Of a stretch of DNA of 64,000 nt, positions 13,498 to 62,751 are shown one piece after another. This stretch comes from Tubulanus polymorphus (taxonomy: Eukaryota > Animalia > Nemertea), in the NCBI RefSeq assembly GCF_964204645.1, contig NC_134033.1, positions 2,748,131 to 2,812,130 on the forward strand. The letters run 5' to 3'. Under the pieces are notes generated by a model. It worked only from the letters and a program-made list of their open reading frames with translations. It ran no database searches and had not been told where the DNA came from. Position numbers and translations under genes: made by a program. Position 1 is the stretch's first letter, and every line of letters starts with the position of its first letter.

Positions 13498-14149
13498 TTA
13501 ACCGTGTGATCTGTTTATTTATATAAGGGACCATACGTTTTAAATAAGTAAGGTTCAGAATATGACGATAACTGATTGTTTGATAAACCGGTCAGAAGTG
13601 AACCGGGTTTAAATCCGGCAACTAGAGTCAGGTTTCACGAGGTCCCGAACAAAGTTCCGGGGCTATTTCATCTAGTTTGTTGGAACACTGATTCTAGTAC
13701 GAAAACATGATTTCTGGATCAATGGTGCAATACGTACTCGATGGGACTGTACCGGAGTCCTATCTTCGGTTTCAAACGTGTCTGGCACGGTGACGGTCGT
13801 TAGAGCTCGCCTGACTAGAGATTTATCTTTGTGAAATCCGAAGTTTCCTCTGACAATATTTCATTTTTGTAACCTCGATGAGACTGTATATACTATAGAA
13901 AGTCTTCTCGTTTCGGTTTTGATTGCGTCAGGTATAGTGGCAGTCGAAAAGCCCGCTAGACTTGTCGAGATTCATCTTTGTGAAATCGGAATTTTTCAGC
14001 ACTATGTAATTTATTTCCCATCTGACAACGATGTTGAAAATGTGCGGCGTACGGTAGGCTTAGATTTTGATGGGAGGTCGAGAGAGACAGAGAGCTAAGT
14101 GGGTGTAACTGCTGGAATCACTGCTAAAACGCATTCTGTGCGCTTCAAC

Positions 14150-15235
14150 ATGAATTTTACCACAATCTTAACGACTGCTGCTCCGCGATGGTGCAAGGAC
14201 CTATCACGACCAGAACGATGGGATCACGTTTTCAGCTATAATATTTATACGTACGGATATTTTCCAGCTTCAGTTTTAGGAATGTTTCTAAACTCTGTTT
14301 CTATTCTAGTATTCAGAAAGATCGGTCGCTCCACTTATCAAACTATAATCATTCTCGCCTGGTTTGATTTACTGTTCGTATTTTCAGTGTTTCTTCTTTA
14401 TCCATTTCGAATGTATATCATCTATATGAGTTCCAGAGTATTTATTCTCGGGCGTATCGACGACTGGTTTTTTGGACACGAAATTATAATTTGGGTTCTA
14501 CCGCTGTTTTATACGTTTCAAATGGCAAAAAATTGGGGCGTAGTTACAGTAAATTTTGAAAGACTTCTGGTCGTCGCGAGTCCGCTGTATTTCAGACGAT
14601 TCTGGGACAAAAAGCAAATAATTTTTATATCGGTTTTGAACGGCATTATTTCCGCCATTTGTTTCTGGCCGTATTATTTTCCACTACGTTTACCCGGAAG
14701 GCCAAGGCGGCGCTGTTACACACGTTTATATACGATGGGTGCTTTTGGAGCGAAAACAATTCGAACACCTTTTACTTATTCCTCTGCTAGCGCCGCGCTT
14801 TATCTTGATAATTCATACATGTTCATGACTGTTTCTACACCTTTTATTAGTTTAATTGTGATAAATCTAACTTTGTTCGGAATTATGATGTTTAGAAAAC
14901 TAAATCGAAAGAAACAATTTCGCGCGGACGCAGCGGCGCCCGGTGAAAAATCTACCGAACTCAAAATATTAAAAGTGGTTCTTATAATTGTATTTCTGTT
15001 TTTTATCTGTGAAATCCCCGCATCGCTGGACCGACTGTTGCATTTCTTGCAGAAGAGGTATGGCTTACGTCACGGTGTAGTTGGGGGTGGGCTGATGATC
15101 ATGCGTAAAGTGGGAATTCTGTTCAGTGTTATAGACTCGTCCGTAAATTTCTTCGTTTACTGCGCAACAAACGGCGCCTTTAGAAAAAAAGCTAAACAGA
15201 TTTTACTAATAAATTATCTGTTGGACTCTAAATAG
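14150..15235 (+). CDS. Intronless class A GPCR, FMRFamide-receptor-like (lophotrochozoan expansion type)
   Basis: First ATG at 14150 (MNFTT, N-glycosylation sequon); seven hydrophobic segments; TM1 GMFLNS, TM2 LAWFDL, TM3 FERL (DRY equivalent), TM6 FFICEIP, TM7 DSSVNFFVY. Confidence 0.9.
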   Translation: MNFTTILTTAAPRWCKDLSRPERWDHVFSYNIYTYGYFPASVLGMFLNSVSILVFRKIGRSTYQTIIILAWFDLLFVFSVFLLYPFRMYIIYMSSRVFILGRIDDWFFGHEIIIWVLPLFYTFQMAKNWGVVTVNFERLLVVASPLYFRRFWDKKQIIFISVLNGIISAICFWPYYFPLRLPGRPRRRCYTRLYTMGAFGAKTIRTPFTYSSASAALYLDNSYMFMTVSTPFISLIVINLTLFGIMMFRKLNRKKQFRADAAAPGEKSTELKILKVVLIIVFLFFICEIPASLDRLLHFLQKRYGLRHGVVGGGLMIMRKVGILFSVIDSSVNFFVYCATNGAFRKKAKQILLINYLLDSK

Positions 15236-17923: not shown

Positions 17924-19009
17924 CTATTTAGAATCCCACAGATAATTTATTAGTAAAATCTGTTTAGCTTTTTTCCTAAAGGCGCCGTTTGTAGCGCAGT
18001 AAACGAAGAAATTTACGGACGAGTCTAAAACACTGAACAGAATTCCTACTTTACGCATGATCATTCGTTCATCAAAAGATACGCCGTGGAGTAATCCATA
18101 CCTTTTCTGCAAAAACCCTAACACGCGGTCCAGCGAGGCGGGAGTTTCACAAATAAAAAACAGAATTACAATGATAATAACCACTTTTAATATTTTGAAT
18201 TCGGTAGATTTTTTACCGGGCGCCGCTGCGTCCGCGTGAAATTGTTTCTTTCGATTTAGTTTTCTAAACATCATAATTCCTAATAAAGTTAGATTTATCA
18301 CAATTAAAGTAATGAAAGGTGCAAGAACAGTCATGAAAATGTTGGAATTATTAACGTGAACTGCAGCATTAGCACGGGAATAGGCAAAAGGTGTTCGAAT
18401 TGTTTTCGCTCCAAAAGCTCCCATCGTGGATTGACTCCTGAAACAATGTCGCGTGGCCTTTCCGGGTAAACGTTGTGGCAAATAATACGGCCAGTAACAA
18501 ACAATGGATATAACGACATTGAAAACCGACAGAAAAATTATTTGTTTATTGTCCCAGAATCGTCTGAAATACAGCGGACTCGCGACGACCAGAAGTCTTT
18601 CAAAATTGATTATAACTACGGCCCAATTTTTTGTCATTTGAAACGTATGAAACAGCGGTTGAACCCAAATTGTAATTTCGTGTCCAAAAAACCAGTCGTC
18701 GTAACGGCCAAGAATAGACACGCTGGAATTCATACCGATTTTGAATATTCGAAGTGGATAAAGAAGAAACACTGAACATACGAACAGTAAATCAAACCAG
18801 GCGAGAATCATTATAGTTTGATAAATAGCGCGACCGATTGTTCTGAATACTAGAATAGAAACAGAGTTTAGAATCATTCCTAAAACTGTAGCCGGAAAAT
18901 ATCCGTACACATAAATTCTATAACTGAAAACGTGATCCCATCGTTCTGGTGGTAACAGGTCCTTGCACTGCCGCGGAGCAGAAGTCGTGGAGATTGTGGT
19001 AGAATTCAT
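17924..19009 (-). CDS. Intronless class A GPCR, FMRFamide-receptor-like; paralog of 14150-15235
   Basis: ATG at 19009 (MNSTT); collinear and highly similar to the + strand copy with the same TM motifs. Confidence 0.9.
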   Translation of the reverse strand: MNSTTISTTSAPRQCKDLLPPERWDHVFSYRIYVYGYFPATVLGMILNSVSILVFRTIGRAIYQTIMILAWFDLLFVCSVFLLYPLRIFKIGMNSSVSILGRYDDWFFGHEITIWVQPLFHTFQMTKNWAVVIINFERLLVVASPLYFRRFWDNKQIIFLSVFNVVISIVCYWPYYLPQRLPGKATRHCFRSQSTMGAFGAKTIRTPFAYSRANAAVHVNNSNIFMTVLAPFITLIVINLTLLGIMMFRKLNRKKQFHADAAAPGKKSTEFKILKVVIIIVILFFICETPASLDRVLGFLQKRYGLLHGVSFDERMIMRKVGILFSVLDSSVNFFVYCATNGAFRKKAKQILLINYLWDSK

Positions 19010-20536
19010 TCTTCCATGACCTGTAATCAGTGACTCGGTAACACCCCACTCGCTCTCTGTCTCTGTTATTACATCTAAGCGTACTACACGCGGACGCACG
19101 TTTTCAAAATTCTCGTCGGATGGAACGTAAATTACATAGCGCTGAAAATTCAGATTTCACGAAGATGAATCTCTATATATGTCATATATAAAGTCAGGTG
19201 AGCTCTACGACTGCTGCGAGACAGTTGTCTCATCGGGTACAACGCATCATCGATTAAGAAATCAAGTCCTTTTTAAACCCCGTCACTTCAGTTAGAAAAC
19301 ATATTGTATGTGTATAATAATAAAACAGATCTCTTGGGAAAAAACTTAATTAGGGTTAGGGTTAACCACGTGTGCTTATAGTTAGGTCCAGAGTATGGCG
19401 ATCATTGGTTCTATGATAAACCAGCCAGAAGTAAAACTGATTGACATCCTGACCTGATTGAGTCAGGTTTCATGAGGTCCCGAACAAAGTTCCTACCAAC
19501 AGATCCCGCGTGGTGTTATTTACGGGTGGATGCTGACACATTTACTGCCTACGAACCGAAACGTTGGATGTTCTGGGCAAGAACACTCGTGTGTTTCGGT
19601 TCTTGTGAGGGGTCCACCCTCCGATATTCTGGACTGGATATTTTCTGAAGAAAGATCAATATTCAAGGTTGAAAATTTTGTAGTGGCAATTATATTCGCT
19701 GGTTTACCAGATCTGAAAATGCGAGCGACGAAACCACGGCGAAGTTTGGAAAAAGGCCCTAAATTGCTAAGTGGATTCCTCTCCCTCCCCTTTGACCCTG
19801 GATCCGCCTCTGATCAAAATGATTATTAAAAGAAGCCTTGATACCAAAACAAGAGAAAGTTCCGCGACTTGCGTCAGGGGACGAATTTCTAAATTGGACG
19901 AATAATTTGAATTAAGAGTTTATGCGCCCTACATACAACTCGTTTGTAGGCCTATACTACTGACTCATGGGTACATGACTGCTGATATTTTTGAGTAGAA
20001 AACGAATCCGTTGACAATCGTTCATCTCTTCTTTGTCGTTTATTTCAGATAGATAGATAGATATTTCATTGTCCACAAAATAAAATCAGCATTGACAAAA
20101 TCTGTTTCCTATGTTAGTGCACGATATCATTACTTGTGTTATAAATGGCAAGTGGGGATTTAACAGCATTAGCCGCACCGGCGATGGGCAGTTTTATATC
20201 AATTTTACACATTAAACAAAAATTCAAATTCAAAGGTTATCATAAGCAACTGGTCGCTAATTACCTTCGCGGGACTGGCCCCAGTTAAATACAGGCACAA
20301 GCCCCTCAGTCAGAGAGTAACCATATGTAGAATAAATTATCTATTGTCAACCTGACGACGTAGTTTGCTTAAATAACGTAATAGGAACAGTTTCTTCGTC
20401 GTTCACGGAATCAGATCCACTACCGTACACGCGTCACGAAGGGGGATTTATTTCTTTACGGGCGCGTATAGATTTCTAACTTGGGCGATTGGTTTTTAGA
20501 AAAGACCTGATTTATGGATTATTCATTGGTACGTAA

Positions 20537-21367: not shown

Positions 21368-22339
21368 CTATTCTAAATCGTCCCCGGGAAGTTGTTCCCC
21401 GCATTGAAACTTCACGAAGTCCGAAATTTCCAACGAATTTTGTTCCAAGAATTCTTTAACGGTGATCGATTCGTCCATCAGGAATTCCTGAAACAACAAC
21501 CGCTTTTCGTCGTCTTTATTCGAGTCGGGTTCGTCGTCGTCGTCCGGCGAACCGACGCGGTCCGGGTTCATGCCGACGATATGCTGGCACAACTGGCGCG
21601 CCAATTCCTCCGTTTTGAAGCGCGCGCCGTCAGGCGGCGACGCCGTCCGGCGGTACGAAACAACGGCGCAGTATTTACCGAGTTGGCACGCGCCCGAACT
21701 CGCGCTTTCGGGACCGGCCGAATGAACGTAGCTCGCTAACTCGAAACCGTCCGCCGCGCGCATCACGACGCCGCGACGCGGCGCCATATTCTCGCCGATG
21801 TTCCCGATCACCAACGCGATCGCGTCCGATACGGTTTCGGCGCCGTCGCACGGCAACGACGCGATTCGACTTTTATCGAACGCGACGATATTTCGCGTAT
21901 CGCTATTCGAAGTCGAGCCGCCGCGTAAACAGGCGTCGGCGACCTGTTGCACCAACGCGTGGAACTTCTTATTGCGCGCGACGAAATCTGTTTCGCAGTT
22001 CAGCTCGACGATGGAGGCGGCGTCGCCCTCGACGATTAATCCGATCAGCCCGTTAGACATGGCGCGGTGTTGTAATTTAGTCGCTTTCGCCCATCCCTCT
22101 TTCTGCGCCTCGGCGCGAAGCCACTCCTCGGCTTTGTCGACGTCGTTTTCGAATCGGTCGAGAGCCTTGCGACAATTAATAAACGGATAACCAGTCCGTT
22201 TACGTAATTTACTTAACGAGGCCTTGTCGGCGGTTAGGTAGGCGGTCAGGTGCACCGAACGACCTATCACAGGCGGCGGTCTAACGACGATTCGACGGAG
22301 ATGCCGCGAACAGAGACCTCGCACAGCAGCGGAAAACAT
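21368..22339 (-). CDS. TSFM: Mitochondrial elongation factor Ts (single coding exon; probable 5'UTR intron ~22347-22611)
   Basis: Arg-rich presequence MFSAAVRGLCSRHLRR; LSKLRKRTGYPFINCRKAL; IVELNCETDFVARN signature; IGENM; QLCQHIVGMNP; C-terminal FVKFQCGE. A splice acceptor lies 7 nt upstream of the ATG. Confidence 0.96.
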   Translation of the reverse strand: MFSAAVRGLCSRHLRRIVVRPPPVIGRSVHLTAYLTADKASLSKLRKRTGYPFINCRKALDRFENDVDKAEEWLRAEAQKEGWAKATKLQHRAMSNGLIGLIVEGDAASIVELNCETDFVARNKKFHALVQQVADACLRGGSTSNSDTRNIVAFDKSRIASLPCDGAETVSDAIALVIGNIGENMAPRRGVVMRAADGFELASYVHSAGPESASSGACQLGKYCAVVSYRRTASPPDGARFKTEELARQLCQHIVGMNPDRVGSPDDDDEPDSNKDDEKRLLFQEFLMDESITVKEFLEQNSLEISDFVKFQCGEQLPGDDLE

Positions 22340-24217: not shown

Positions 24218-27200
24218 ATGATGGTGGCTGGAAGTCTCACCGCCGTGTTGGCAGTTTTGTTTTTGGCGGCAACTTCAGTCGTTTTAACGGAGGCGCAAAT
24301 TCCAGCTAAATTCAAGAGACTTTACACTAAAGGGACCAGAGGAAAGGTAATAACGGGGTTTTTTATTGAAAATAACTTCCCCGGAAGAGTGAGCTGATAG
24401 AATGTCTAATGTCTGGTGTTTGTAGTTGATTTTCATTTAGAAATGTCTCAGGTGAAGCACTGAACACATGTGAAGTGTGGACGATCAGTTTTTGAAAGAG
24501 TGCTGATAAAATGTCTAATGTCTGGTGTTTGTAGTTCATTTTCAATTAAAAATGTCTCAGGCGAAGTACTGAACACATGTGGTGTGGCCGATCAGTTTTT
24601 GAAGCTTTGCTTATAAAATGTCTAATATCTGGTGTTTGTATTTCATTTTCAATTAAAGATGTCTCAGGTGAAGCACTGAACACATGTGAAGTGTGGACGA
24701 TCAGTTTTTGAAAGTTTGCTGATAAAATGTCTAATATCTGGTGTTTGTAGTTCATTTTCAATTAAAAATGTCTCAGGTGAAGTACTGAACACATGTGAAG
24801 TGTGGACGATCAGTTTTAGAAAGTTTGCTGATAAAATGTCTAATATCTGGTGTTTGTATTTCATTTTCAATTAAAAATGTCTCAGGTGAAGCACTGAACA
24901 CATGTGAAGTGTGGATGATCAGTTTTTGAAAGTTTGCTGATAAAATGTCTAATGTCTGGTGTTTGTAGTTCATTTCTAACTCTGGTGAAGCTCGAAGCGT
25001 GCTGATAAAAAGTAAAGTAAAGAATGGTGAAAAATAACGAATGTCCGATGTCGTGCTTATAGTCCAGGCTGATTGGTATACGAGGTGTGGAGACTGCCGA
25101 TTGAGACACCTGCATATTTAAAAATATTCTCAATGATTTTCAGATGTCTTCAGTGATGGGAAACTACGCTCAGGGATCGTGTAATATGGGTTTACAGAAG
25201 GTTGATAGTACCGGCTATGACGGCTATGCTCCCGTTGCGATTGGCGACAATAATTTCTACCGTGGAATGGCCTGTGGCATGTGTTTAGAGGTAATCCGTG
25301 CAAATAATCATTCTATCCCCGAATTTCTCGGTAAAAGTTTGCAAAATACATAACAAACCAAACGGATTCTTATATCATCTCGATCTCAACATAGAATCCC
25401 GTACTAGGAATAAAAAGAGTCCGAAATGTTTCCCTTGGCTAGTTTAAAGTTTATCCGACTTTTGCAACCATATCCTATACGTAATAGACATCTTCAGGAA
25501 TCCGTCCAGCAAAATAGTGGTCAAATGCTTAGCAAAATTGTTGTTGGAAATCTCTATCTTTGTTTTTGGCATTCGTGCAAATTTGTCCAGACGATCGATA
25601 TTGTTTGTATAAATACGCGCGCAGACGGATATTTATCTACACGTGTGTGCATCTATATCAGTCTTCCGCTGCTGAAAGAGTGCAGTCAGGTTTATTGGAT
25701 GAGTTAAATTAATTTCCTGAAATTTCACGCATTATTAAATTTGTGAATTGATTTTAATATTTGAATTACAGATACAATATAATGGCAAGAGGTATATTGG
25801 ATTGGTCAAGGATCAATGTGGGGGCTGCCCACGACCAGGTAAACAGTGTTTGAATCTTGGAATTCATATTCAATCCGCACAACTGTGGAACTGGATCCAG
25901 AGTCAAATTAAACCCACACAACCGTGGAACTGGATCCAGAATCAAATTAAACCCACACAACTGTGGAACTGATTCCAGAGTCAAATCAAAACGACACAAC
26001 TTTGGAACTGGATCCAGAGTCAAATTAAACCCACACAACTGTGGAACTGGATCCAGAGTCAAATTAAACCCACACAACAGTGGAACTGGATCCGGAGTCA
26101 AATTAAACCCACACAACTGTGGAACTGATTCCAGAGTCAAATTAAACCAACACAACTGTAGAAATGGTTCTAGGGTCAAATGAAACCCACACAACTGTGG
26201 AACTGGATCCAGAGTCAAATGAAACCCACACAACAGTGGAACTGGATCCAGAGTCAAATTAAAACGACACAACTGTGGATCCATAGTCAAACTAAAAACC
26301 ATGTGGAACTCAAGAATGGAGAATGACAAGCTATAACAATTATACGTCAAGGGCGACCTAGACAGGGGGCTATTCTGGTCGACAGACTGAGAACTGGGTT
26401 GGAGGTTTAATGACTGCGTTTACATAGAAAAGCTGGGGGGGGGGGGGGGTCTTAGAAAAATGTCTATCCGATCTTAGAAATTTGTTCCTTACGTATATAT
26501 CATTCTATTTCAGGCGGTTTCAACGTTGGACTGAGCTTACCGTCGGGATACAGAAGAAACCGCTGGAAAGCTATACCCTGCCCGGTCACGGGCGAGGGTC
26601 TGAAGTATAGATTTAAGCAGGCTAACCGCTGGTGGACTCAAATGGCGTTTTCCAATAACAAGTACGAACTCTGTTAACAAACACACCTAAATGTTGTCCT
26701 TTCTAACAAATGCAATCACAATTCTCAATTGTTATCGGGCCATTACATCATATCAGTTATTTTCAACAATATCAAGCAGTAGATGTGTTATTATTTTCGT
26801 CAAGGCGTCAAAGTTTCAAGTTGTCTTTTCTTGTTAATGTCCAGATATCCGATAGCTTTCGTTGAGTATAAAAGTGGAAATCGATGGGTGAAGGTGAAGC
26901 CAGCCGGTTACGCGGCGCTGTTCACGATGACCCAAGTCGCCGGTAGCGGTAAATTTGATATCAAGGTCACCGATATAATGGGTACTGAAACACAAGCGAA
27001 GACTTCTGGTTGGAATAGTAAGTTTGTTTTTTTTTGTTGATATGACTCATGACAGATTTGTAAGTGTTGATTTCATGTATTCTATTTGTAGCCTTTTTCA
27101 AGCCATTACAAGAAAATGCCAAACCTCCAACCACAGAACCCCCTACACCAGAACCGCATACCACAGAACCCCCAACACCCGAACCGCATACCACAGAACC

Positions 27201-29903
27201 CCCAACACCGGAACCGCATACCACAGAACCCCCTACACCGGAACCGCATACCACAGAACCCCCTACACCAGAACCGCATACCACAGAACCCCCTACACCA
27301 GAACCACATACCACAGAACCCCCTACACCAGAACCGCATACCACTGAACCCCCTACACCAGAACCGCATACCACAGAACCCCCAACACCAGAACCGCATA
27401 CCACAGAACCCCCTACACCAGAACCGCATACCACAGAACCCCCTACATCAGAACCGCATACCACAGAACCCTCTACACCAGAACCGCATACCACAGAACC
27501 CCCTACACCGGAACCGCATACCACAGAACCCCCTACACCAGAACCGCATACCACAGAACCCTCTACACCGGAACCGCATACCACAGAACCTCCAACCACA
27601 ACGACAGTTGTACAAACCACTACACTTAACAACTTAGGTCCTAAATCGTTGTACGAACTCTTCGAGGTAAGTTTTGGAATAAGAAACAGATGAGTATTCG
27701 CCGAAAGATGATCAGAAATCTCAACATAAATTCAAATACATATTTTGCAGCGACGTGATGGAGTCATGTCAACTCACATGGCATCGGAAAGTTCGGGATC
27801 ATGCGGAATGCCATCGGAGGTGCGGCCAGCCGGTCCACTACACGGATATTTCGGTTACGCGGCTGTAGCGCTGGGCTCTGATTACTACCACGAGTCTTTA
27901 ACGTGTGGAATGTGCATGGAAATAACGTACAACGGGAGGAAGTACCTGGGAATGGTCAAAGACGTCTGTTACGGCTGCCCGACTCCAGGTGAGTTAACGT
28001 AGTAAGCCCGTCCTTCGCCACTACTGCCTTAACCTTCGTTTCCCAATTTCTAGAACTGAAAAATCTGTAAATAGTTATCAGCGAAATCGATCGTGTAAAA
28101 TTCATGGGAAATATAGCGTTTTTAAAAGTTGCTAGATTCTGTTATGGTTCTAGCGACTTAAGGCCGATCTAAGGCCATTTTTAAGACTTTAAGTCGTAGC
28201 ACCTGAGGGGCCGGTTCCATAGACAGGGCTTAGACTTCAGACCGTTCCAAGACAAACTTAATTCTATAGCCAATCTGATAATTTAAGACCAGTGTTAAGG
28301 TTTAAGACCTCTTTTGGTCTGAAGTCCTGACTACGGAACCGGTCCCTTGGGCCCATAAAATTAACCAGAAATCCCTCGTTGGTTTTATCAGGGAAATGTA
28401 ATGAGACCTCCCTGGTTTTATAGATCGATGATGTTTATTTCGTTTTTGTTGAAGGTGGTTTCGATATCGCGATGCAGCTTCCGTCGGGCTGGATCCCGAA
28501 TTCGTGGAAAATGGTGCCGTGTCCTGTTCGCGGTAACATACAGTACCGATTCACCGAAAAAAACAAATTCTGGACGCAATTAACATTTCACAATTACAGG
28601 TATGGAAATAGTTCTTCCGAGGGATGCACGTAGAAGCATTTTTTCTTTTTAGTTTCTTTGATGATGGAGTTTTAGGAGTAACCCCGAAGCAGTAAGAAAA
28701 TAGACTTTTCTTCATATAACTGTGCGTTTTATTTTTTACGTAGAAGAAAGAAGATTTTTACAACAAAAATTTTAGGGCGTTCCGGGATCAGTTGCGCATC
28801 GTACCTTGAGTACAAGTGTTCCTAAATCTTGAGACTAGCCTTAAGTTATTGTATTGGTTATAGAACTAAGATGAACTTTATGATAGCGAATTTTAATGGT
28901 AATCGGGATATTGTGGGAGTGGATGTGTGTACTACGTCATTGATATTGGGGCTGGACTGGTTGGCGTTCAATATTGTCGATATATTCAAATTGAAAATAA
29001 CTTTCTTGATCCTTGATATTATATCATTCATAGTATATCATTCGTTGTCGAAGATATCGAGCAATATGTGGGTTATTCTTCAAGACGTCAATAAACTTTC
29101 ATGTCAGTTTTATCTTTAGAAATGCCATTTACGAAGTGAATTACCGATGGCCGGGAGAAGAGACGTGGCGAGCGACCGAACGCGCTAAATACGGCGCGTT
29201 CTTCATCATGAAGGACGTACCCGCAGACGGCGTCATCGAGGTCAAGGTCAAGTCCATCTTCAACTACGACGTCGTCGGCCGTACTACCGGCTGGAGTGAG
29301 TGTAGGCGGATCTTACAGGGATCCGTCAGAAATCTACCACCCGATTTAACACAATTTCGATGGAAATACCATTCTTAATTACTACAATGCCAAATACGAC
29401 CGACCTACGCCCAGCTATCTAAAGCCGGGCGTAGGTCGGCCTTGCGACGGCTTGCGACTCACTGCGACGCGACTTACTGCAACCGCCAGCGACGATCGCG
29501 TCGCAACGACCAACCGACCTACGCTACCTTGCGACTGCCAGCGACGGGTTGCGACTGGCAGCAACGCCAGTCGCAATGAGTCGCACATGTTCTACTTTCT
29601 GCGACGCGACGCGACCATCGCAACCGATCAACGCGCTCTTGCGACTGAAGAGCAACTAGTCGCACACGGTCGCTGACAATCGCGTCGCAACCGACTTGTG
29701 CAGCCACTTGTGATGCAACGCGACGATCGCGTCGCGTCGCAAGGTCGACCTTCGGCCAGCTTTCAAAGATGCGCCTTGCTCTGTTCAGTTCACGTACCGG
29801 TATGTTAATTTTCAATTGATTTTTTTTTGTAGATTTGGATTACCAAGATTTCGGTGTTCAGCAGCCAGCAGTTTGCATTCAAACGACTCCCGATTCTGAC
29901 TGA
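24218..29903 (+). CDS. Secreted tandem expansin-like protein: signal peptide, EXLX/YoaJ module (DPBB+CBM63), Pro/Thr/Glu/His linker, second EXLX module; 622 aa
   Basis: Exons 24218-24346, 25144-25290, 25772-25838, 26514-26661, 26845-27017, 27092-27666, 27751-27988, 28455-28599, 29120-29295 and 29833-29903 total 1869 nt in one frame. Motifs: GSC, ACGMCLE, VKDQCGGC, WKAIPCPV..YRFK..RWW..NNKYPIAFVEY..W..GY..KVTDIMG; module 2 TCGMCME, VKDVCYGC, GGFDI, WKMVPCPV. AATAAA at 29908. Confidence 0.9.
24400..24975. repeat. ~109-bp tandem repeat x ~5 in intron 1 of the expansin-like gene
   Basis: aaatgtctaat(a/g)tctggtgtttgt recurs at ~24401, 24510, 24617, 24726, 24835 and 24944. Confidence 0.92.
25872..26290. 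repeat. 39-bp minisatellite, reverse complement of the 6558-6980 family
   Basis: cacaactgtggaactggatccagagtcaaattaaaccca x ~10. Confidence 0.92.
27130..27597 (+). repeat. Coding 30-bp tandem repeat encoding (TTEPPTPEPH) x ~15.5
   Basis: accacagaaccccctacaccagaaccgcat units inside exon 27092-27666. Confidence 0.95.
29421..29763. mobile_element. TIR element with internal GCGAC repeats in the last intron of the expansin-like gene
   Basis: AAAGCCGGGCGTAGGTCGGCCTTGCGAC ... GTCGCAAGGTCGACCTTCGGCCAGCTTT imperfect inverted ends. Confidence 0.7.
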
Positions 29904-44460: not shown

Positions 44461-45028
44461 TCTACCGCTGTGATCCCCGTCTTACTTTGTTGCTATTGTT
44501 TCTTCAAAACAATCTGTACCAAACAAGACCTTACTCACCACAATCAGATATCCATGCGCTTCACTTAGCTTCAACTCAGTTATTATATTGACTGTAGAGT
44601 GTGAATTGTCGAAACAGATATTGACGAAGTGTTTTACAGAGACGCAGAATATTTTTAGGTAAAGATAGAAAATATTATCGAATATTATAACAAACTGAAC
44701 GCAGTTCGGGAGCGACAGTAAATATTTTTAGAGAAATAATTGCACATGATTATAAACAAGATATATTGAAACACGTCTAAATTTAGAAACCGCGGTAATT
44801 ACTGCGAAACCGAGCGCAGGTGAAAGTAACAGAAATACGAGACTGGCGCCAGTTTGATGGGAGATCTTTTTACAAAATAATTGGACTCAATCCATTCGTC
44901 AACTTCTGACATTTGCGAATTCGTCATTTATTACTGTGCAGCGACACTTTTGAGAAATATCGCGCAAACTTGGAAAGAGTTAGAAATGTATTAGTTTTGA
45001 AGCGTGAATTGTGTTCAATATGCAGCGA

Positions 45029-48000
45029 ATGAAAGCGTTGTTCGTAGTTTTACTGATCGCTTGCGGAGACTGTATATTTACGCGGGCTGATCGCGCAAAC
45101 TCTGTCGAGGAAGCCGCGTCTGTTACAGTCAGTTCATCTTGTAACAACACTCAATACTCCGTCGATTCTACGTCTGGTTACATCGTTTCACCGAACTATC
45201 CGTCGTTAGTTCGCGGTGTTGAATGTCGTTGGTTCGTCAACAGCTCTTTACCGGGAAGTTTTCTCGTTCAAGTTTACTACGACATCGAGCCGTCGATATT
45301 CTGTAACGAAAATTACCTTCTCGTCGGTGAGTCCGACAACAAACTCTGCGCTACCGGAAAAAAACAACAAGATATCCGCAGTAACGATTTGATTTCGTTG
45401 TTTTTTAAGAGTAACGTCGATGGAGCGCGAGGTAGTCGGGTTTATATCATATATCGTTTTGAAGAACAGAGTCGTTTGAAAATTGTACATAAATGCTCAA
45501 AACGTGCAGTAAACGAATTACCAACTCAAACAGGTTATAAATTCACAATTTCTACTCGGCGATGTAAATTGTTGTTTGAATGGATCGAGATGCCAGACAG
45601 GTTTGCAATGAATTTAACGTTTATAGAGATAGATTTCAGATTAAGACCAGGTGAGGATCCGATGAAAACTCGTCCTCAAATTTACGACGGATGGAACAGC
45701 ACCAGTGAACCTATAGCTCTTATACGAGAACAAACCGGACATCCGCCTTCATCGTTTTATACTAAAACTAATAAAGCACGTATTGAATTCATTTCAAATA
45801 AACTGTCGTTTAAGTCACAGTTACTCGTGCAAGTTTACCAAATATCAGATTGGAACATCTCTAACCCGTTAATTCAAGTCTACAATAAATCAGGACTGCT
45901 CACTACAATTGATGGAATACCACATATAGTAACTCAGTCTAAACACTTATACTGCTGGTCTATCACAGTCGATGTTCTGCAGTACGTCGTCTTCAACTGG
46001 ACACGTGATCTCGTCTCGTCACCAGGTGTCGTTGGTGTATATAAACAGGAAGGATTACGTATTGTGAGAACTGATATTTTACTCAGTTTTAACCATCTTA
46101 ATTCCCTGAGTGTAAAATCAGACGGATTTCTCGTGATTCTGTGCGTTTTAACGACATCGGATTTCTCAAGATCGAATTTGAAAATAGAATTTAAAGCGAA
46201 ATCAATGACAATATCAGACGTCTACGTCGACAAACCATGGATATCGGTAAGTTTATTACAGTGATTTGTAAGTTTGGATCGTGTAATAAAATCATTGTAA
46301 TTACATATATTTTGATGGCGATTTTGACCAGTGAAACTTTACCGAGAAACTTGGAATAATAACGTAATGCGACCCAAAACACATGTTGTTTGCGCAGACA
46401 CTAATTATGATGGGTGTTGAGAATTTGGGTTAAGTTTGGAACATCTTGAACTGTTATTGATATATTTATCTAATTCTAAGTCGTAAGGAGTTTAGAATTG
46501 TCGTATTGTAAACGTTCAATGTTGTCATCGATTCTCTTATATTTCAGAATGATGTGGGCGCGAAGGATTTAACAGCTTATCGATTGTTCCCGAGAACGAG
46601 GAACACATTGTATCGTGTAGCTACATTACAACTAAACTGGAAAGTGAACATCTATGAAGAACAGTTGAAACTAACAGTGCTATCAGAAAACTGTGATCGA
46701 GCTGGTTCTTATATATTTGATGGTAGTAATTTCACAGCTAGACGCTATGGTCCGTATTGTCCTGGTTCATACTACGGTCGATCTGTCGTCAGCCTGATTA
46801 CATCAGGTGGACCGGTTACTGTAGTAGCATACGCTTATTACTATAACAATCAGTTAACAGTTGGTGATCCCAGCAGGTCATATCTTAAATTAGCTCCTAC
46901 TGATTGTGACGGTTACGTTCTACAGGATGAAGAACGTCAGATCAATATGACGTCACACTGTCTCGTGATTACACCTGAAAATCGACGCCTTCGCTCGAAA
47001 AATATTCACATATTATCAGAACACGAATATCAAATTGACCGATGTTTTCTCAAGATGTCATGGCGATGTGATCAGTTTCTGAGTTTGAGTAATCAGTTTC
47101 TTAATAACAGTCTCGTATTAAACACTGTAGATTTCACAGTTTATGAGATTGGATTCTGGCAGTATCCACTAATAGTTAAACTACGTCGTAAATGTCTAGG
47201 AGTGAAAAAAGCGGATAGTTTTGGATTTGCCGGTTCCCGTCTTCCAGTTACTACTAAAGATAAATGTGGACTCGTGCAGTCACCGAACTACCCGGGTCGG
47301 GCAGGAGGTACATTAAAATCTATTTCATATAAATTTGAAAACCCGATACAACAAAATATATTTCAATATTACAGATTTATTGTCAAATCTATTGGACTAG
47401 TTTCATGTGAAACAAACAATGCCCGTCGAAATGATCCGATCATATTGATGCAGATTATTATTTTCAACCTTTTCCTAAATGGAAAAATATCTAAAATTAT
47501 TAGTAACCAACATGAAACTAAAATATGTGAAAATAACGCGGTTCGTGGATTTATATTTCATAGTTTAACAGATAATACTCTGCGTTTTGAAGTTAATAAT
47601 CATATCCCGACATTTCAAATACAATACACTTTACACGAGTCGTTACCGATTAAACATTTCGATGATTTCTACTGTAAACAAGGATTTCTAGATTCCGGAA
47701 TTTCTTGCATCAAATTCATCAGAGATGAACGTCTGAATTGGGAGAACGCTGAAATATACTGTAGACAGAAGTTCGCGGGACATCTACTCAGTATCAACTC
47801 GGAACAGGAAATGATTTCCATCAAAAGATTATTCGCTACAGAACTTCTCCGAATGGCGTACACATTAAAAGCGCTCATAATGATGATTGGATTGAAATGG
47901 CAGGTAAGACTAATGTATTCAAATATGAATTAGAAAAGAAAGGTTTTTAAAGAGAATGATATATATTTCATTTTCTTCACGAAACAGAATGATGGTTATT

Positions 48001-51000
48001 ACACGTGCACTGACGGTAAACCATTAAGCTACGCAGAGTGGTATAAACCTGTTATTAATGAAACGATACCAGAAGTTATTCGAGGATTGATATCTCCGCT
48101 AAGAAAACAACCGATTAATGACGTCAATATGCCGTGTACGGCGATGATACTAAATAATCCACGAGGATCAGCGAACTGGGTTCGATTCCCGTGTCAAATC
48201 GAGGAGACGCACACGACATTCATTTGTGAATCTGAGAGAATCGACATCAAAAACAAACATAATTCAACGATAAACGACGCGAACAATTCAACAAATACAG
48301 GCTTAAATAAAACCAAAGATCAAATGATTCCCGATGTTACTTTAATAAATTCAACCTGTCCAAGAGGTTGGGTAACTATTACCGGACAATGTTATCAAAT
48401 ACTAACCGACTGGAAAAACAATCGAGGTTTGAATATTCGGATTGCTAGAGAAATGTGTAACAGCATCCGCACCGAAATAGTAAGAATCAACTTAAATATA
48501 GAAAGTGATATGAAAAATTTGATCAACAAATTTCAATATCGCCATCAATATGGCGCTATACTGACAATGGACCGCGGCGGATTTAAAGTTATCAAACCAC
48601 TGGTGACCAGAGATGAAATTACTTATATTCAGTCAGTTAAATGGTTATTGAAACCTTTCGATAATACAAAAGATAAAGTGCATTCCGTGTTGTGTACCTA
48701 TAATGTAACTGGTAAAGAGTTAGCTTCTATAAGCGGTTGTAAATCGTGGCAATTTGAATGTAACGATCGAAGATGTATCAGCGACCATCGCGTATGTGAT
48801 ACCAGACACGACTGTCAACACGGTGAAGATGAACTCAATTGTACGGATATCAATTTACACAGTCAGTTCCGCTGTAACGATGGACAGGTTATATCGATTA
48901 GCGGTTTCTGTGACTTTATGAGAGATTGCGTCGATGGCTCGGATGAGAACTCGTGCTATCATCCACCGTGTTTATCTACGCAATATCGCTGTTCCAATGA
49001 CCAATGCATCGATAGTTATAAACGATGTGACGGACTAGCCGACTGTAAAGACGGTTCCGATGAGATCGGATGCACTGCCGAACTTTGTCAGGGGTTCTCG
49101 TGCGCGGACGGTGAATGTATTAGTTCTCAGTTGTATCGGGATGGTGTCGTTGATTGTAGCGGAAGTCTCGAAGAAGACGAATTGGTCAATAATATGACAT
49201 TGAATCCCGAAGTTTACTGTAATAATGACAATCACTGTACGACTCGTTTCACAGATCTGTGTAAACAATCGGGTGAACAAAGATGTTCGTTCAATTCTCC
49301 TCGCTGTTATTCCCGACACGAAAGGTGTTAGAAAGGATGCCGATTGGTTTCCCGGTATGTCGAAATCTTGAACACATACTCGCGTGTAATGACTTCCAAT
49401 GCGCGGCTGGTACTGTAAAATGTCCGGCATCTTACTGTATACCGATCAGACACGTTTGTGACGGTCGATCCGATTGTCCTAATTCAGAAGATGAACGAAA
49501 CTGCGAGACTTGGTCGTGTCCGGGAATGTTTAAATGCGGCCAGGAAAATCGATGTTTTCCGCAATCTGAAGTTTGCGACGGTTTCGTAAATTGTAAACAT
49601 AACTCGGATGACGAGACATACTGTAACGTCACGTGTCCTGAACGTTGTAATTGTCGGGGCCATTTAATCGATTGTGAAGATGCTCTTTTATCAGATATTA
49701 CTGGTCAATTTATAGAATCAACTCGGGTTTTGATTTTGTCGAATAACCGAGTCGTATTTAACGAGTCGACGTTCAACTCTTTCATTTATCTTCGTTTTCT
49801 CGATATTTCGGCCAATAATTTGTCTTACATCGTTCCAAACGCGTTTTCTAATCTAAACAATCTATACACATTAGACCTTACTCACAACCGCATAACATCA
49901 TTATCTGCTAATACCTTCGCAGGTTTGATCAGTTTAGAACAACTATTTCTTATCGGAAATCCGCTGCAACATTTAGAAGACGGTAGTTTCCGAGGTCTGA
50001 TGTCACTGACTGTTCTCGATCTTCACGGACTTTCTATATCGGTTCTCGGTGGAAATGTATTTAAAGGTTTATCCGCATTACAGTCGTTAAATATCAGCAG
50101 TAACAGAATACATTATATTTCTAGCTATGCTTTTTCTGGATTGGTTCGACTTGAAATTTTAGACCTTGTCAACAATTATGAAGTAATATCCGTACAAAGA
50201 AACGTTCTTGGCGATCTTACATCATTGAAATACCTCGCTTCGGATGCTTACAAATTTTGCTGTATGGCGCCGAATGTTGACCGATGTCTTCCCGAAGCTG
50301 ATCAATTTTCGACCTGCTCTGACCTGATGGGTAACGCTGTGCTGAGAGCCATTATCTGGATGATCGCATCTTTCAGTTTTCTCGCTAACAGTATCGTTAT
50401 CTTATTTCGCGTTCAAGCTTTGCGGATGGAATCCTCCGGAACACGTAACACATCTTCAGATATCCTCATCATAAATATTGCAAGTTGTGATTTTCTGATG
50501 TCGGTCTATTTGTTTTTGATCGCGGGAGATTTTTTGATTATGCCGTCTCGCCGGGGTTATTGTCACAGTTTCGTGCGAAGGTTCCTTGACTTTTCTCTTA
50601 TTTCTAACACGTCAGAGATATTCAAATATCGTCAACCCATTTTCTAGAAGTCCGATTATAACTCCGAAATACGTTATCGGTATTTGCAGCATTTGTTGGC
50701 TCGTTATAAGCACAGTTTCTATTCTACCGCTGTCATCGTCGTCTTACTTCGGAGACAATTTTTACGGTACAACCGGAGTTTGTTTGCCTATGAATTTACT
50801 GACGATCGACGTCAATAGCTGGCACTATTCATTCGCTATTTTTGCCTTGTTTAATGCGTCCATATTGGCTACGATAATGGCGACGTACGCTCAGATGTAT
50901 AGACTAGTATCTGGAAGTAGGTCGGGCTCGGGAAGAGCCGATCCTACCGAACTTGTTTTAGCTCGAAGGAGTTTAGTAATCAATCTTTGTAATCTAGTTT

Positions 51001-51203
51001 GCTGGCTACCGATAATAATCGTTCAGTTTTGCGCCGTATTTTCGGTCGAGATACCGAACCAGGTGGCCGCTTGGCTGGCCGTTCTATTTCTACCGATCAA
51101 CTCGTCTCTGAATCCGCTTCTTTATACAATACTAACTATCGATATGAAATCTATTCGTGAACGCAATAAACGACTACTAGGATTGACGACATCCAGTAAA
51201 TAA
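45029..51203 (+). pseudogene. GRL101-like LDLa/LRR GPCR copy A, frameshifted (ectodomain ORF of ~1305 aa intact up to TAG at 49329-49331)
   Basis: Exons 45029-46246, 46548-47903 and 47988-51203. Relative to copy B, a 4-bp deletion at ~49328 creates an immediate TAG, and 58 bp are replaced by 8 bp at ~50530 in ECL1. Confidence 0.88.
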
Positions 51204-51749
51204 ACAACAGGTTGACAGGAGTCCCTGTATAATGTTTGCCTGTCTATAAATAGGGGTTGAAACTCGAAATACTAAAACTTAGTTGAGTTCGTTTGAAATC
51301 GCTTGACCGAATTAGTTTAATTTTTTATTGTGTCATTCACAATAAATAAGTTTCCAGTTTCTAGGCGCCTGGCGGTCCGTCGAGATCCTCATTGTTGCGA
51401 TAAATTTGCGCTCATTTTTTGAAACATACGTTTTTATTCAATATCATACAGCTCTGCAGTGTATTGAAGTTAAATCATGGTGATTAGATATTTCGACTCC
51501 ACAAAATGTCTACTCGCCATGATTCATGTGACGTGTGGAGCTCCTTAGTTTATTCCGGAAGAGTTTGAGTCTTCCGGTCGCGATTTGGGTTGGTTTAATC
51601 GAAACGGTAGCAATCATGTCCCGAGAAAATGGCGAAAGGGCATCATTTAAAAAAACCAATATTTGAAGTTCTCTTGGATGATTCAATTAGTGACGATGGT
51701 AGTTGGTATATCAACCCTCGTCACGCGTGAGTGAACACGAAATACCCTG

Positions 51750-52870
51750 TTAAAATTAACCTAACCTCAGTTTCCTAGAGAGAAATAATTTATAATTTCT
51801 ACTCACCGATTTATGTGAGCAGTTTTTAGATTATCATTCAGCTCACAGGAGTTCTCTATCATACCAGGTTGGTTTAGTCAGCACACACTTGATGCAATCA
51901 GGTCCTGATGAAGTGAGGAAGTTCTGGAATCTGGAAACTTTATTTCTCGGTTTAGTCAACAATCAGATCCTGCACAGGAAGATCTTCTCTGAAAAAGCAA
52001 CTTAAGTGTTTAATGAGACTTGAATCAGCTTGAATCCGGCCTAACTTAAGTTTGACATTTAGATTTGAAATTAAAATGTCCGCTCACCGATTCATGTGTG
52101 GAACTGCATGGATTTCAATCTGTTATCGTTTCCTTGGAAGATGTGACATCCGAGCTACAGCACTAATATCTGTCCGGCCTTGTAGGTTTAGTCAGCAAAC
52201 ATTGACAGCAATTAGATCATGTGAGAAGTAGAGCTTATCTGAAAAAAAGTATTGATCTCAATTATAAATTTTAATTTGCCTCGATACATGCACATTGTAA
52301 TCTGTTATAGCCAGTATAAAAATCCTACAAATCTACTCACCACCAATTTCTGTGCGGAGCATCATGGATTATCTCAAAAATGTCTGGAGTTCACGCGTCG
52401 GTTTACTCAGCTTCGGGGTATTGGCAGCAATCAGGTCCTGAGTGAGGAATGGCTGATCTGAAAAACAACAATTTCATATTTCAGTTCTGACTGGAAGAAT
52501 CAATTTTAAGTTTAGGTTGGATGTCCGAGTGAGATCCCAGAGACAGGGAGTCAATTAGACAAAGTTATCCACGAGATGTGAACTGTCGAAAACATCCCTC
52601 GGCAACTTCCCAAATTAGTCTTTAAATTAGTGAAAAAAAACTTATAGATCTCCCTTTCTACTAACCTAAACTCACGTAAGGACCGGACATATATGCGCGT
52701 GTATAGTGAATTCAACGTGTTTTAAGAATTAATCCAAACTGGTTCAATTCAAATCGAAACGTATTCATTGATTTCAAAGACCGAAGACAATAACATGACA
52801 TAATATGAACTGAGTTTGTCATAATGCGGTTCAATGGACACGAGAACCACTGGCTACAAAATACCGGACT
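51750..52870 (-). repeat. Inverted copy of the ~31970-32860 exon-like repeat family
   Basis: Reverse complement matches 31970-32860; contains three AG...GTGAG-bounded units. Confidence 0.8.
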
Positions 52871-53312
52871 GACCCTGTTAATATTTTAACTTTAGAAACC
52901 TAACTAATATATGAAGTAGATATAATATCAGATATTCTCTAACAGTCCTCGTTAAAATGATATTTCTATACAGTGAATTAAATCCTTTCAAAATTGAATT
53001 AACTGAAAAATCACTTTGCAAGACAATCTGTTAATTACATTTACATTGTCTATAACTCGAATTGTCACTGAAATCGAACACGGATCATAGAACTATTTGC
53101 AATCGATTTATCAAATAAAATGAATTAAGATGATATCATCATAGGAAATATGCGATACATTCAATTAATCAAATGTCCATTGTCTGTAACTTGTTAGAAC
53201 TGTCTAAGCACCTGCAGCAACAGCAGTAGTAGTAATAGTAGCCAAGCAGGAAATACTGCTATTTATATTTATGAATTCTAGTCATCAAGATGATAAATAG
53301 AGGCTACTTTAC

Positions 53313-53913
53313 TACTTTTCTCTTAATTCTAACGCGTCAGAGATATTCAAATATCGTCGACCCGTGTTCTAGAAGTCCGATTATAACTCCGAAATACGTT
53401 ATCGGTATTTGCTGCATTTGTTGGGTCGTTATAAGCACAGTTTCTATTCTACCGCTGTCATCGTCGTCTTACTTCGGAGACAATTTTTACGGTACAACCG
53501 GAGTTTGTTTGCCTATGAATTTACTGACGATCGACGTCAATGGCTGGCTCTATTCCTTCGCTATTTTTGCCTTGTTCAATGCGGCCATATTGGCTACGAT
53601 AATGACGACGTACGCTCAGATGTATAGACTCGTATCTGGAAGTAGGTCGGGTTCGGGAAGAGCCGATCCTACCGAACTGGTTTTAGCTCGAAGGAGTTTA
53701 GTAATCAATCTTTGTAATTTATTTTGCTGGCTACCGATAATAATCGTTCAGTTTTGCGCCGTATTTTCGGTCGAGATACCGAACCAGGTGGCCGCTTGGC
53801 TGGCCGTTCTATTTTTACCGATCAACTCGTCTCTGAATCCGCTTCTTTATACAATACTGACGATCGATATGAAATCAATTAGAACGAGATATAAACGTCA
53901 ACAAAAGAAGTAG
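53313..53913 (+). pseudogene. GRL101-like GPCR fragment (TM3-TM7 and a distinct C-tail)
   Basis: Homology to copy B begins abruptly at acttttctcttaattctaacgcgtcag; the tail is RTRYKRQQKK versus RERNKRRLGLTTSSK. Confidence 0.85.
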
Positions 53914-54217
53914 ATTAAGAAAACTTCAGTAGCAATTAAAGAGCTTTTAAACGAATCGTTTTAATGTTCATGGTCGCGCACCAAACTCTAGTAATGAATC
54001 TAAAGAACAAAGGACAGATATTAACGGTGACCTTTGGGCCTATGGTCCATTCAGTTTTTTTATCACTACTTTATCTAAACAGTTCATATGAAATAGTTTT
54101 TTTTCGTAGCCATTAGATTAATTGTAGATTGTTTGTTAAATGCAATAGTATTTGCTTAAGGTGTGGATTTAAGGTGCTCGGCGAGCCCTTTACTGACCAG
54201 TTTACTGATCAGGAATA

Positions 54218-55147
54218 GGGACCGTGCATAAAGTACGTACGCTTGACTTCCGGGTATTTTTAACCCCCCTCCCCCCTTGTACGCTCATTGTATGTTTTTT
54301 ATAACCCCTCTTGCGTACATACTTTTAGGGGTAACCCCCCCAGTAAAACAGAATTTTCAGGAATAATGGTTTAAAGAAGGCAAAATCCACCCTGATTCAA
54401 CAGAGTTCCTGCTGACGTTGATCAACGATCTTCCATGGCGACAAAATGAAAGACTGAAAGTGGGGAATTCCCGCGATCCAAATATAATATATCGAATGCA
54501 ACAAACCCAGGGAGACCGGTTTCGCAATTAAGGCAGTGTTTGCTGTACATAAAAGGAAGACAGGTTTACCCGCAGACATAGATGTTAATATTAAAATAAT
54601 GATCACAATAAAAATAAACTATTGTTTGTTTTATTCTACTACCTATTGAATATAATTATGAACAGATGTATCTATCATTTCAACAGATTTATCTTCAAGA
54701 CAGTTTATTAAAAAACAATTGTAAAATGTCAGAATATGCGGCTTTGTATGCCTCCATAAACTGGTCATATTTCGTAGCGGCCATTATCGTAGGATCTAAT
54801 AAAGAGTACCAATGTTGAAACAATAGTGGATGTTTAAATGAGCAATTAGCGACAGCTACGGCTTATGATCGAACCCCAAACAGTCGAATGTGAAAAAATA
54901 ATCCAACAAACTTCAAGTAATATATTCATTTTATTGTCACTAGACACACTTAGGATCGTCGGCAAACGGGGATATTTGTGAAATTCACATTATGTTTCGT
55001 GCACAAAGTACTTACTATTAATATTAACCCTCCCCCCTTGGAAAGTATGTACGTTTTTAGCTGACCCCTCCCCTCCCCCTGTACGCTTTTGTACGGATTT
55101 TAAGAACCCCCCCCCCCTACGGACGTACGTACTTTATGCACGGCCCC
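54218..55147. mobile_element. Non-autonomous PIF/Harbinger-like DNA transposon (~930 bp)
   Basis: GGGACCGTGCATAAAGTACGTAC ... GTACGTACTTTATGCACGGCCCC ends with a 3-bp ATA/ATA flanking duplication. Confidence 0.85.
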
Positions 55148-56511
55148 ATAGACGATTACATAGATGACGACTTATTAATTTATGAATGTATTCACTGATG
55201 TAGTGTGAGCGTGTGTGTGTAAGAGTGATTCGTCAGAATCAATACGAGCGGAACTATATCCCATACTCGGCACCGTAATCCACCGAACGCCGAAGGCAAA
55301 CGAGAATTTATGAATCACGAATGTTCTTCTTTATAGTTTACTATGTACGTGTATCTGTATATAGAGATGTACATCGAGAAATCTTGGGGGTAGGCGGGGG
55401 TAGCGGTAAATGGGAGGGCTGTATATCGGGGATTGACTGTATTCATATTATAGTTAAGCAAGCCACGACTAGGTCAATATTGGTTAAGAAAAACTCTCCC
55501 TACAGAAATTGACGTTTTAATCGGAATCAATATTTCAAAAAGAAATATTCCGTCCTGTTTACCAAACACAATCAATAATTTAGAATTTTCGTTTATATGC
55601 ATCTGAGTATAGATTTTCAATTTCTTGGTTACGTGAAGCGCGATTTACTCATTCGGAAAGTCAAAGCTGACGTTTCCAAGAGTTTGGCCGTTCGTTGATG
55701 TGTCGATATCGTTCTCTGCGGACATGGAGCGACCGTGATTGCTGAGATCGTCTGTCGATGCCGATTCTCACAAGGACGAGGAATCGCCCGTGACCGACAG
55801 CACGACGCGGTACAAACTGCTCTACAAATCTATGTATTGTTGTACAAATTTTGCTCGCGATAATTCGATTTTCAAAGGGATTTAATGCGGCTTTTAAAGC
55901 GAACCCTAAATGTTACTGAGAACTGGTAGAATATCTGATCATCCACGTCATACATTCGATATGTATTCGAGAAGATATTTGAAGTTGAAATAAGTACTAT
56001 CCTGCTATTATTCCAGCCGGTGGTGCTCGTGTCCATTGAACGGCAAATGACCGAACCAGTTCATACTGCGTCCTGTTATTGTCCTCGGTCTTTGAAATTA
56101 GAAGAAATACGTTCGATTTGAGTTGAACAGAACCCGAGGAATATTTTGCAGTAAAGATAGAGAAAATATCATTCGGTACGCAGTTCGGTAGCGACGGTGA
56201 ATATATTTTGAGTGAAAAAATTGCGCGTGATTATAAACACGATATATTGAAGCACGTCTAAATTTAGAAACCGCGGTAATTACAGCGAAACCGAGAACAG
56301 AAAGATGAAGGTTTCACAAATACGAGACTGGCGCCAGTTTGATAGGCGGATTTTTTTAACAAAATAATTGGACTCGATCCATTCGTCAACTTCAGTCATT
56401 TGCGAATTCGTCATTACTTTGCATCTACTCTTTAGAGAAAGGTCGTGAAAACTTGGAAATAGTTAGAAATGTGTTTGTTTTGAAGCGTGAATTGTGTTCA
56501 ATATGCAGCGA

Positions 56512-62500: not shown

Positions 62501-62751
62501 TGGTTTTAGCGCGAAGGAGTTTAGTAATCAATCTTTGTAATCTATTTTGCTGGCTACCGATAATAATCGTTCAGTTTTGCGCCGTATTTTCGGTCGAGAT
62601 ACCGAACCAGGTGGCCGCTTGGCTGGCCGTTCTATTTTTACCGATCAACTCGTCTCTGAATCCGCTTCTTTATACAATACTAAATATCGATATAAAATCT
62701 ATTCGTGAACGCAATAAACGACGACTAGGATTGACGACATCCAGTAAATAA
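56512..62751 (+). CDS. Intact giant GRL101-like leucine-rich-repeat GPCR (copy B), ~1948 aa: signal peptide, CUB and CUB-like domains, C-type lectin x2, LDLa x~7, LRRNT/LRR, hinge, 7TM
   Basis: Exons 56512-57732, 58045-59400 and 59482-62751, both introns phase 0. CUB GYIVSPNYP..CRW; CTLD LNWENAEIYC..HLLSINSEQE..IGL..WTDGKPLSYTEW; LDLa C..CD...DC.DGSDE; LRR LDLTHNRL..F.GL; hinge YKFCC..DQFSTCSDLM; TM7 LPINSSLNPLLY. An alternative ATG lies at 56503. Confidence 0.93.

Follow-up and report, generated by a model that had tools for sequence, protein, structure and literature searches.

Expansins of the EXLX type combine a domain 2 (D2) that binds β-1,4-glucan surfaces with a domain 1 (D1) that loosens the packing of the chains without hydrolysis. 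What such a protein could do in an animal without a cellulose wall, and where it came from, is the question raised by a gene of the nemertean Tubulanus polymorphus at 24218-29903 on the forward strand of a 64,000-nucleotide stretch (the window; NCBI RefSeq assembly GCF_964204645.1, contig NC_134033.1, positions 2,748,131 to 2,812,130). This gene almost certainly belongs to the worm and encodes two EXLX modules in tandem. It probably descends from an old eukaryotic or animal lineage, and the protein may bind, and perhaps loosen, glycans foreign to the animal.

Two EXLX modules in one gene

The ten exons proposed in an earlier note on this DNA were rebuilt from the sequence, and every coordinate holds (Table 1). 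Each of the nine introns is GT-AG, and the summed phases give 1869 nucleotides, or 622 amino acids and a single terminal stop at 29903; RefSeq calls the same 8/9 and 9/10 junctions in paralogous copies of these exons. The product consists of module 1 (residues ~44-231), a Cys-free stalk of 182 residues, and module 2 (~414-610). Its single hydrophobic stretch, located without a dedicated predictor, spans residues 1-26 and agrees with the signal peptide claimed previously. Three sequencing runs over the gene show DNA-like behaviour, with its exon junctions absent among the joints listed; the one RNA-like run has no coverage of the locus. We infer transcription, and an exon 6/exon 7 splice through which one gene would join both modules, because intron 6 is 84 nucleotides long and in phase and exon 7 has no signal peptide.

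We gathered 103 bacterial EXLX proteins by motif scan, and a profile built from them matches both modules across D1 and D2 and in that order, at residues 52-215 (E 8e-17; model positions 30-192 of 211) and 449-591 (E 6e-15; positions 43-189) with Z=1e5, which bears out the reading of the gene as two DPBB+CBM63 modules. The modules are 42% identical to one another (77/185, E 4e-56). Exon 4 alone matches Bacillus subtilis YoaJ (2bh0) at E 0.018, the exon profile A4 matches six solved EXLX proteins (E 1e-15 to 9e-8), and a RefSeq protein corresponding to exons 8-10 of a near-identical copy matches three (E 4e-6 to 2e-4). Exon 7 resembles DPBB proteins, including the defence-type Barwin, kiwellin and cerato-platanin, and the language-model neighbours are DPBB_1/EXLX clusters. 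The Pfam check that had been suggested for this assignment failed: neither DPBB_1 (PF03330) nor Expansin_C (PF01357) matched single exons, the genome, or the whole homologues P0003, P0006 and P0044. As Pfam misses exons and whole natural homologues alike, the family sits under Pfam thresholds. The nearest sampled bacteria are less than 30% identical, with ~28% to myxobacterial EXLX.

The closest relative found, P0003, is a 279-amino-acid, spliced-looking contig from Logan run SRR28369062 with 37% and 35% identity to modules 1 and 2, respectively. It has a signal peptide, a basic leader, the same C-terminal motif and a Thr/Ser tail, and differs in having one module only, a Y/H/Y triad and no Asp at the D82 position. 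P0003 matches YoaJ at 3e-7, and its predicted model, with a predicted local distance difference test score (pLDDT) of 78, has solved microbial expansins as its sole structural matches at E below 1e-3 (E 4e-10 to 4e-8, template-modelling scores 0.60-0.68); the two-domain expansin fold is modelled for this relative. A single-sequence fold of P0003 (pLDDT 42) was dropped. Of 1.84 billion representatives searched with exon 7 and no length limit, only two proved to be true relatives; the length-limited searches covered proteins of up to 488 amino acids. A P0003-based search of bacterial genomes and two viral scans revealed no related loci. Another candidate relative, P0001, was dismissed as a Cys-rich chance match.

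In the B. subtilis protein BsEXLX1, the D82N substitution abolishes creep, and W125, W126, Y157 and K119 bind cellulose (PMC5072189, PMC11040781). The equivalents of W125/W126/Y157 that had been recognized by eye in module 1 are confirmed as W154/W155/Y186, and those of module 2 are F531/W532/Y565. D71 is kept in both modules (D106 and D484) and the K119 equivalent in module 1 only. Module 2 has Asp496 at the D82 position; module 1, when aligned pairwise with module 2, has Asn118 there. The modules also differ in isoelectric point (pI), module 1 being basic (9.5) and module 2 near neutral (6.5).

Table 1. Exons of the gene and the segment shared with its partial copies (window positions)
Feature	Position	Strand	Content
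Exon 1	24218..24346	+	start codon, signal peptide (~residues 1-26), short basic leader; GT donor, phase 0
Exon 2	25144..25290	+	first part of module 1 DPBB (D1); CxxGxxCGxC-type cysteines
Exon 3	25772..25838	+	module 1 DPBB; D106 = D71 equivalent; phase-1 end within G79-equivalent codon
Exon 4	26514..26661	+	end of module 1 D1 (Asn118 at D82 position), start of CBM63 (K149, W154, W155); phase-2 end within K135-equivalent codon
Exon 5	26845..27017	+	remainder of module 1 CBM63; Y186 = Y157; single copy in genome
Exon 6	27092..27666	+	acidic Thr/Pro/Glu/His stalk; 30-nucleotide repeat x15.4 at 27130-27590; no Cys
Exon 7	27751..27988	+	module 2 DPBB; D484 = D71; lacks its own signal peptide; single copy in genome
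Exon 8	28455..28599	+	end of module 2 D1 (D496 = D82), start of CBM63 (F531, W532)
Exon 9	29120..29295	+	remainder of module 2 CBM63; Y565 = Y157
Exon 10	29833..29903	+	C-terminal tail, one unpaired Cys, stop codon
Duplicated segment	28297..30379	+	intron 7 to past exon 10; 93-97% identity at eight other places

Sequence variants were noted within the gene. At the intron 7 donor, 21 nucleotides (27989-28009) are absent from one contig of run X1, possibly a second allele, leaving a weaker GT donor. At position 26875 all three runs have A, which changes Ser to Arg in exon 5.

Origin of the family

The description of the locus as a domesticated animal gene is supported by its setting. The T. polymorphus genome measures 268 Mb, and the gene lies on a chromosome-scale contig of 16.5 Mb beside animal genes for mitochondrial elongation factor Ts and G-protein-coupled receptors (GPCRs). 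Exons 1-7 have single-copy DNA depth, and the introns contain very high-copy host repeats. Contig, neighbours, depth and introns together rule out contamination.

Both modules carry introns in the same two codons (phase 1 in the G79-equivalent, phase 2 in the K135-equivalent) and also after the same GW motif, indicating that the module doubling came after intron gain. Exactly the same phase-1 and phase-2 introns occur in the expansin genes of contigs L033 and L037, which we term coral-type because they are 50-85% identical to Stylophora and show its CBM14 fusion; a third intron (phase 0, before the first Cys) is at the same place in L033 and shifted in L037, and was left uncounted. The exon-7 search had also yielded an intron-containing expansin on the long animal contigs L033-L035. 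Related exons fall in a family to which PFX14032.1 of Stylophora pistillata belongs, an expansin with five chitin-binding CBM14 domains after it, and an Exaiptasia gene, AIPGENE19685 (“Expansin-YoaJ”), has an expansin plus chitin-binding layout, is secreted and shows raised expression in the adhesive pedal disc (PMC6626399). A eukaryotic CBM1-CBM1-expansin on a JGI metagenome contig (L190:44-1258) has the same D1 deletion, keeps D82 and is closest to the coral expansins. The lineage therefore appears to travel with binders of insoluble glycans, since its coral kin are fused to CBM14 and its L190 kin to two CBM1 domains. As separate observations, L033:5959-12421, L037 and P0044 are coral expansin-CBM14 fusion genes, and PFX14032.1 is labelled “putative chitinase 3”, yet Pfam finds no GH18 in it, only the five CBM14 domains after the expansin module.

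In a first tree, with 55 bacteria, the two modules were sisters (support 99/92) and were then joined by P0003 (100/99), all on long stems. The free search parted the Tubulanus group from the corals; the topology with all animal rows constrained together was better by 7 log-likelihood units. A second tree included L190 and 29 bacteria; in it every eukaryotic row fell on one side of a 96/93 branch, and L190 grouped with the corals (97/91). Neither tree offers a bacterial donor, and the D1 helix deletion is common to all eukaryotic rows. The doubling of the module is specific to the nemertean line. Judging from the intron positions and trees, old eukaryotic or animal inheritance is probable, a recent transfer into the Tubulanus lineage is unlikely, and a very old transfer from bacteria to eukaryotes is possible.

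The suggestion of a bacterial-type, possibly horizontally acquired gene is accordingly not sustained as a transfer into nemerteans, given the introns shared with corals and the separation of eukaryotes from bacteria. An independent bacterial transfer into nemerteans, followed by intron gain, would fit the bacterial identity of the best solved-structure and BLAST matches (the myxobacterial EXLX among them, at ~28%), the patchy distribution of animal expansins (bioRxiv 10.1101/637728), and the parting of the Tubulanus group from the corals in the free tree that preceded L190. It would have to accommodate two exact intron matches with corals, a helix deletion found in all eukaryotic rows, the 96/93 eukaryotic clade, the better likelihood of the animals-together topology in the first tree, and stems of 1-2.5 changes per site with no close donor, and we regard it as decidedly improbable. 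The same long branches also weigh against confidence in old inheritance, as do the neither recovered nor rejected monophyly of animals alone once L190 is included (p-AU 0.07, approximately unbiased test) and the composition of the trees, whose bacteria are biased to one motif and which hold no fungal, plant or amoebozoan rows. The phylogeny called for by the earlier note stands in part: eukaryotic rows lie apart from the sampled bacteria and the modules are sisters, within a sample that lacks fungi and limits bacteria to one motif.

Proposed function

The explanation that we prefer is that of a secreted two-headed expansin-like protein whose EXLX ancestry among eukaryotes is old and includes early animals, and whose module was duplicated within the gene in the nemertean line once the introns were in place. 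The CAZyme-like arrangement of two modules on a long linker is indeed seen, as two EXLX-type modules and a repeat stalk of 182 residues. Each module would bind an insoluble β-1,4-glycan surface through the aromatic platform of D2; such binding is likely. Module 1 (pI 9.5, W/W/Y, K119, Asn at D82) would serve mainly as an anchor, and module 2, with D71 and D82 kept and an F/W/Y triad, would loosen the packing of chains while leaving them uncut; the stalk, extended and probably O-glycosylated, would allow the heads to span fibres. The target would most likely be a glycan foreign to the worm, for example chitin from prey, or the walls of microbes or algae encountered on the body surface, within mucus or in the gut. 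There the protein could assist the worm's GH18 chitinases. A foreign glycan is favoured over dietary cellulose or self-made chitin because a search of the T. polymorphus genome found GH18 chitinases and no match for chitin synthase (0 candidates), cellulose synthase or GH9, a blank search not being proof. Dietary cellulose seems the weakest candidate, as no GH9 cellulase was found. Overall, we consider this explanation about as likely to be right as wrong, and its anchor-plus-loosener mechanism on a foreign glycan plausible at somewhat less than even chances. As a side observation, the lack of a chitin synthase match alongside GH18 may reflect a loss of chitin synthesis in T. polymorphus.

Several features of the protein count against this explanation. 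D1 is divergent: T12 and T14 are not conserved, the Y73 position is Cys in both modules, and two elements of bacterial EXLX, the 7-residue helix and the C-terminal strand, are either missing or cannot be aligned. Asn118 was assigned to the D82 position by the intron and by aligning module 1 with module 2 without gaps, not by hmmalign. Module 1 need not be inactive, because Cys at residue 73 may make Asn less damaging; according to simulations cited in PMC5072189, D82N may be rescued when residue 73 is non-aromatic. The P0003 model, built with mostly bacterial EXLX rows, is biased to that fold, and the blank genome search leaves chitin synthase possible. Finally, the product, including the joining of its two modules, is predicted here from DNA.

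That last point also speaks for two separate genes, or for a main product comprising module 1 and the stalk, in which retained intron 6 would lead to a stop at 27691; so does P0003, which is exactly one module with a Thr/Ser tail. The 84-nucleotide intron 6, with canonical sites and the right phase, leaves no room for a promoter, and exon 7 lacks a signal peptide and module 2 is intact with its key residues kept, so that this arrangement seems very improbable. Rather more weight, while still unlikely, is due to a structural or adhesive role, in which both modules would be non-loosening, lectin-like heads that cross-link glycans in mucus, tube or cocoon made by the worm itself; the mucin-like stalk would then act as a spacer, and the unpaired Cys at the C-terminus could form dimers. 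Tubulanus secretes a tube, and the bivalent layout with its stalk, the degraded D1 residues and the pedal-disc expression of the secreted Exaiptasia gene (PMC6626399) are all consistent with such a role; the retention of D71 and D82 in module 2 argues against it, as does the lack of a chitin or cellulose synthase match to supply a fibrillar host substrate. An innate-immune function, in which the heads would bind peptidoglycan or fungal or algal walls and agglutinate or weaken skin microbes, draws on the avidity of BsEXLX1 for peptidoglycan (PMC5072189), the basic module 1 and the likeness of exon 7 to Barwin, kiwellin and cerato-platanin. DPBB likeness is general to the fold, however, and we think this function improbable, less so than separate genes.

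Partial copies, neighbours and comparison with known systems

DNA depth over exons 8-10 is about eightfold that over exons 1-7. Their eight partial copies, seven on the same contig and one on a 139-kb contig, are 93-100% identical in protein, and none has exons 1-7 within 7.5 kb upstream; the shared sequence starts at ~28297 (28404 in one copy). Frames and splice sites of exons 8-9 are intact in all copies. Variant sites among them, 10 of them synonymous and 12 non-synonymous, give a ratio of 0.32 (p 0.009, transition bias uncorrected), a weak hint of selective constraint. One RefSeq protein, XP_074658306.1 (C9:2994582-3039555), joins two astacin-MAM leader exons, the signal-peptide exons of a truncated gene copy, in phase to a copy of exons 8-10. 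The junction spans 43 kb with four GPCR genes, and the model may be an annotation artefact; if real, it would be a newly shuffled, secreted stand-alone CBM63 protein. We tentatively envisage, at less than even chances, an unrecognized animal expansin family inherited vertically since at least the cnidarian-bilaterian ancestor and turned to chitin or other non-plant glycans, with the nemertean protein as the first two-headed expansin, an anchor plus a loosener, and its CBM63 half being reshuffled into secreted single-domain proteins.

The copies sit amid duplicated CUB/C-type lectin/LDLa/LRR GPCR genes. In the window, 45008-62748, and further along the contig, lies a tandem array of nearly intronless CUB/C-type lectin/LDLa/LRR/7TM receptors (GRL101-like), 90-95% identical, which takes part in the segmental duplications. 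Closer to the expansin gene, head-to-head and ~1.9 kb away, is the intronless mitochondrial elongation factor Ts gene (21371-22339, minus strand), and two intronless rhodopsin-type GPCR paralogues lie in inverted orientation at 14099-15232 (plus) and 17927-19156 (minus).

A literature search found no paper on nemertean expansins. Few animal expansins have been annotated, and whether they are real genes or contamination was left open (bioRxiv 10.1101/637728). The present locus is a host gene, and the introns it shares with corals favour an old animal family over stray transfers. Its fold is a known one, animal relatives are already annotated, and its function is read from sequence; a chitin-loosening or bivalent expansin, if true, would be of interest to biomass enzymology.

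B. subtilis EXLX1/YoaJ (2bh0, 3d30) and other microbial EXLX proteins (9ms4, 9ms5, 4js7, 7wvr) share with the Tubulanus protein the D1 (DPBB)-D2 (CBM63) order, D71, the aromatic triad and secretion, together with D82 in module 2 and K119 in module 1. The Tubulanus protein differs from them in its two modules on a 182-residue stalk, deleted D1 helix, six Cys in each D1 region, Asn in place of D82 in module 1, nine introns, escape from Pfam thresholds and low identity (<30%) to the nearest sampled bacteria. The cnidarian expansin-CBM14 proteins (PFX14032.1, AIPGENE19685) are closer in being animal and intron-containing, with the same two intron positions and phases and the same D1 deletion, but have one module plus CBM14 instead of a second module, a triad partly lost in corals, and 26-33% identity. 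Expansin-like effectors of plant-parasitic nematodes are likewise animal, secreted and DPBB-containing; their domain order is reversed and their relation to canonical expansins unclear (bioRxiv 10.1101/637728), whereas the Tubulanus order is the canonical D1-D2. Modular microbial expansins (CBM1-expansin swollenins, CBM2- and GH5-expansins) use a Pro/Thr linker, as here, to attach another carbohydrate-active unit, but in Tubulanus that unit is a second whole expansin, a layout absent from the fusion list of the same microbial-expansin survey (bioRxiv 10.1101/637728). The gene is thus real and its architecture new within the known expansin family, and the natural Asn/Asp pair within one polypeptide provides a built-in test of the D82 mechanism.

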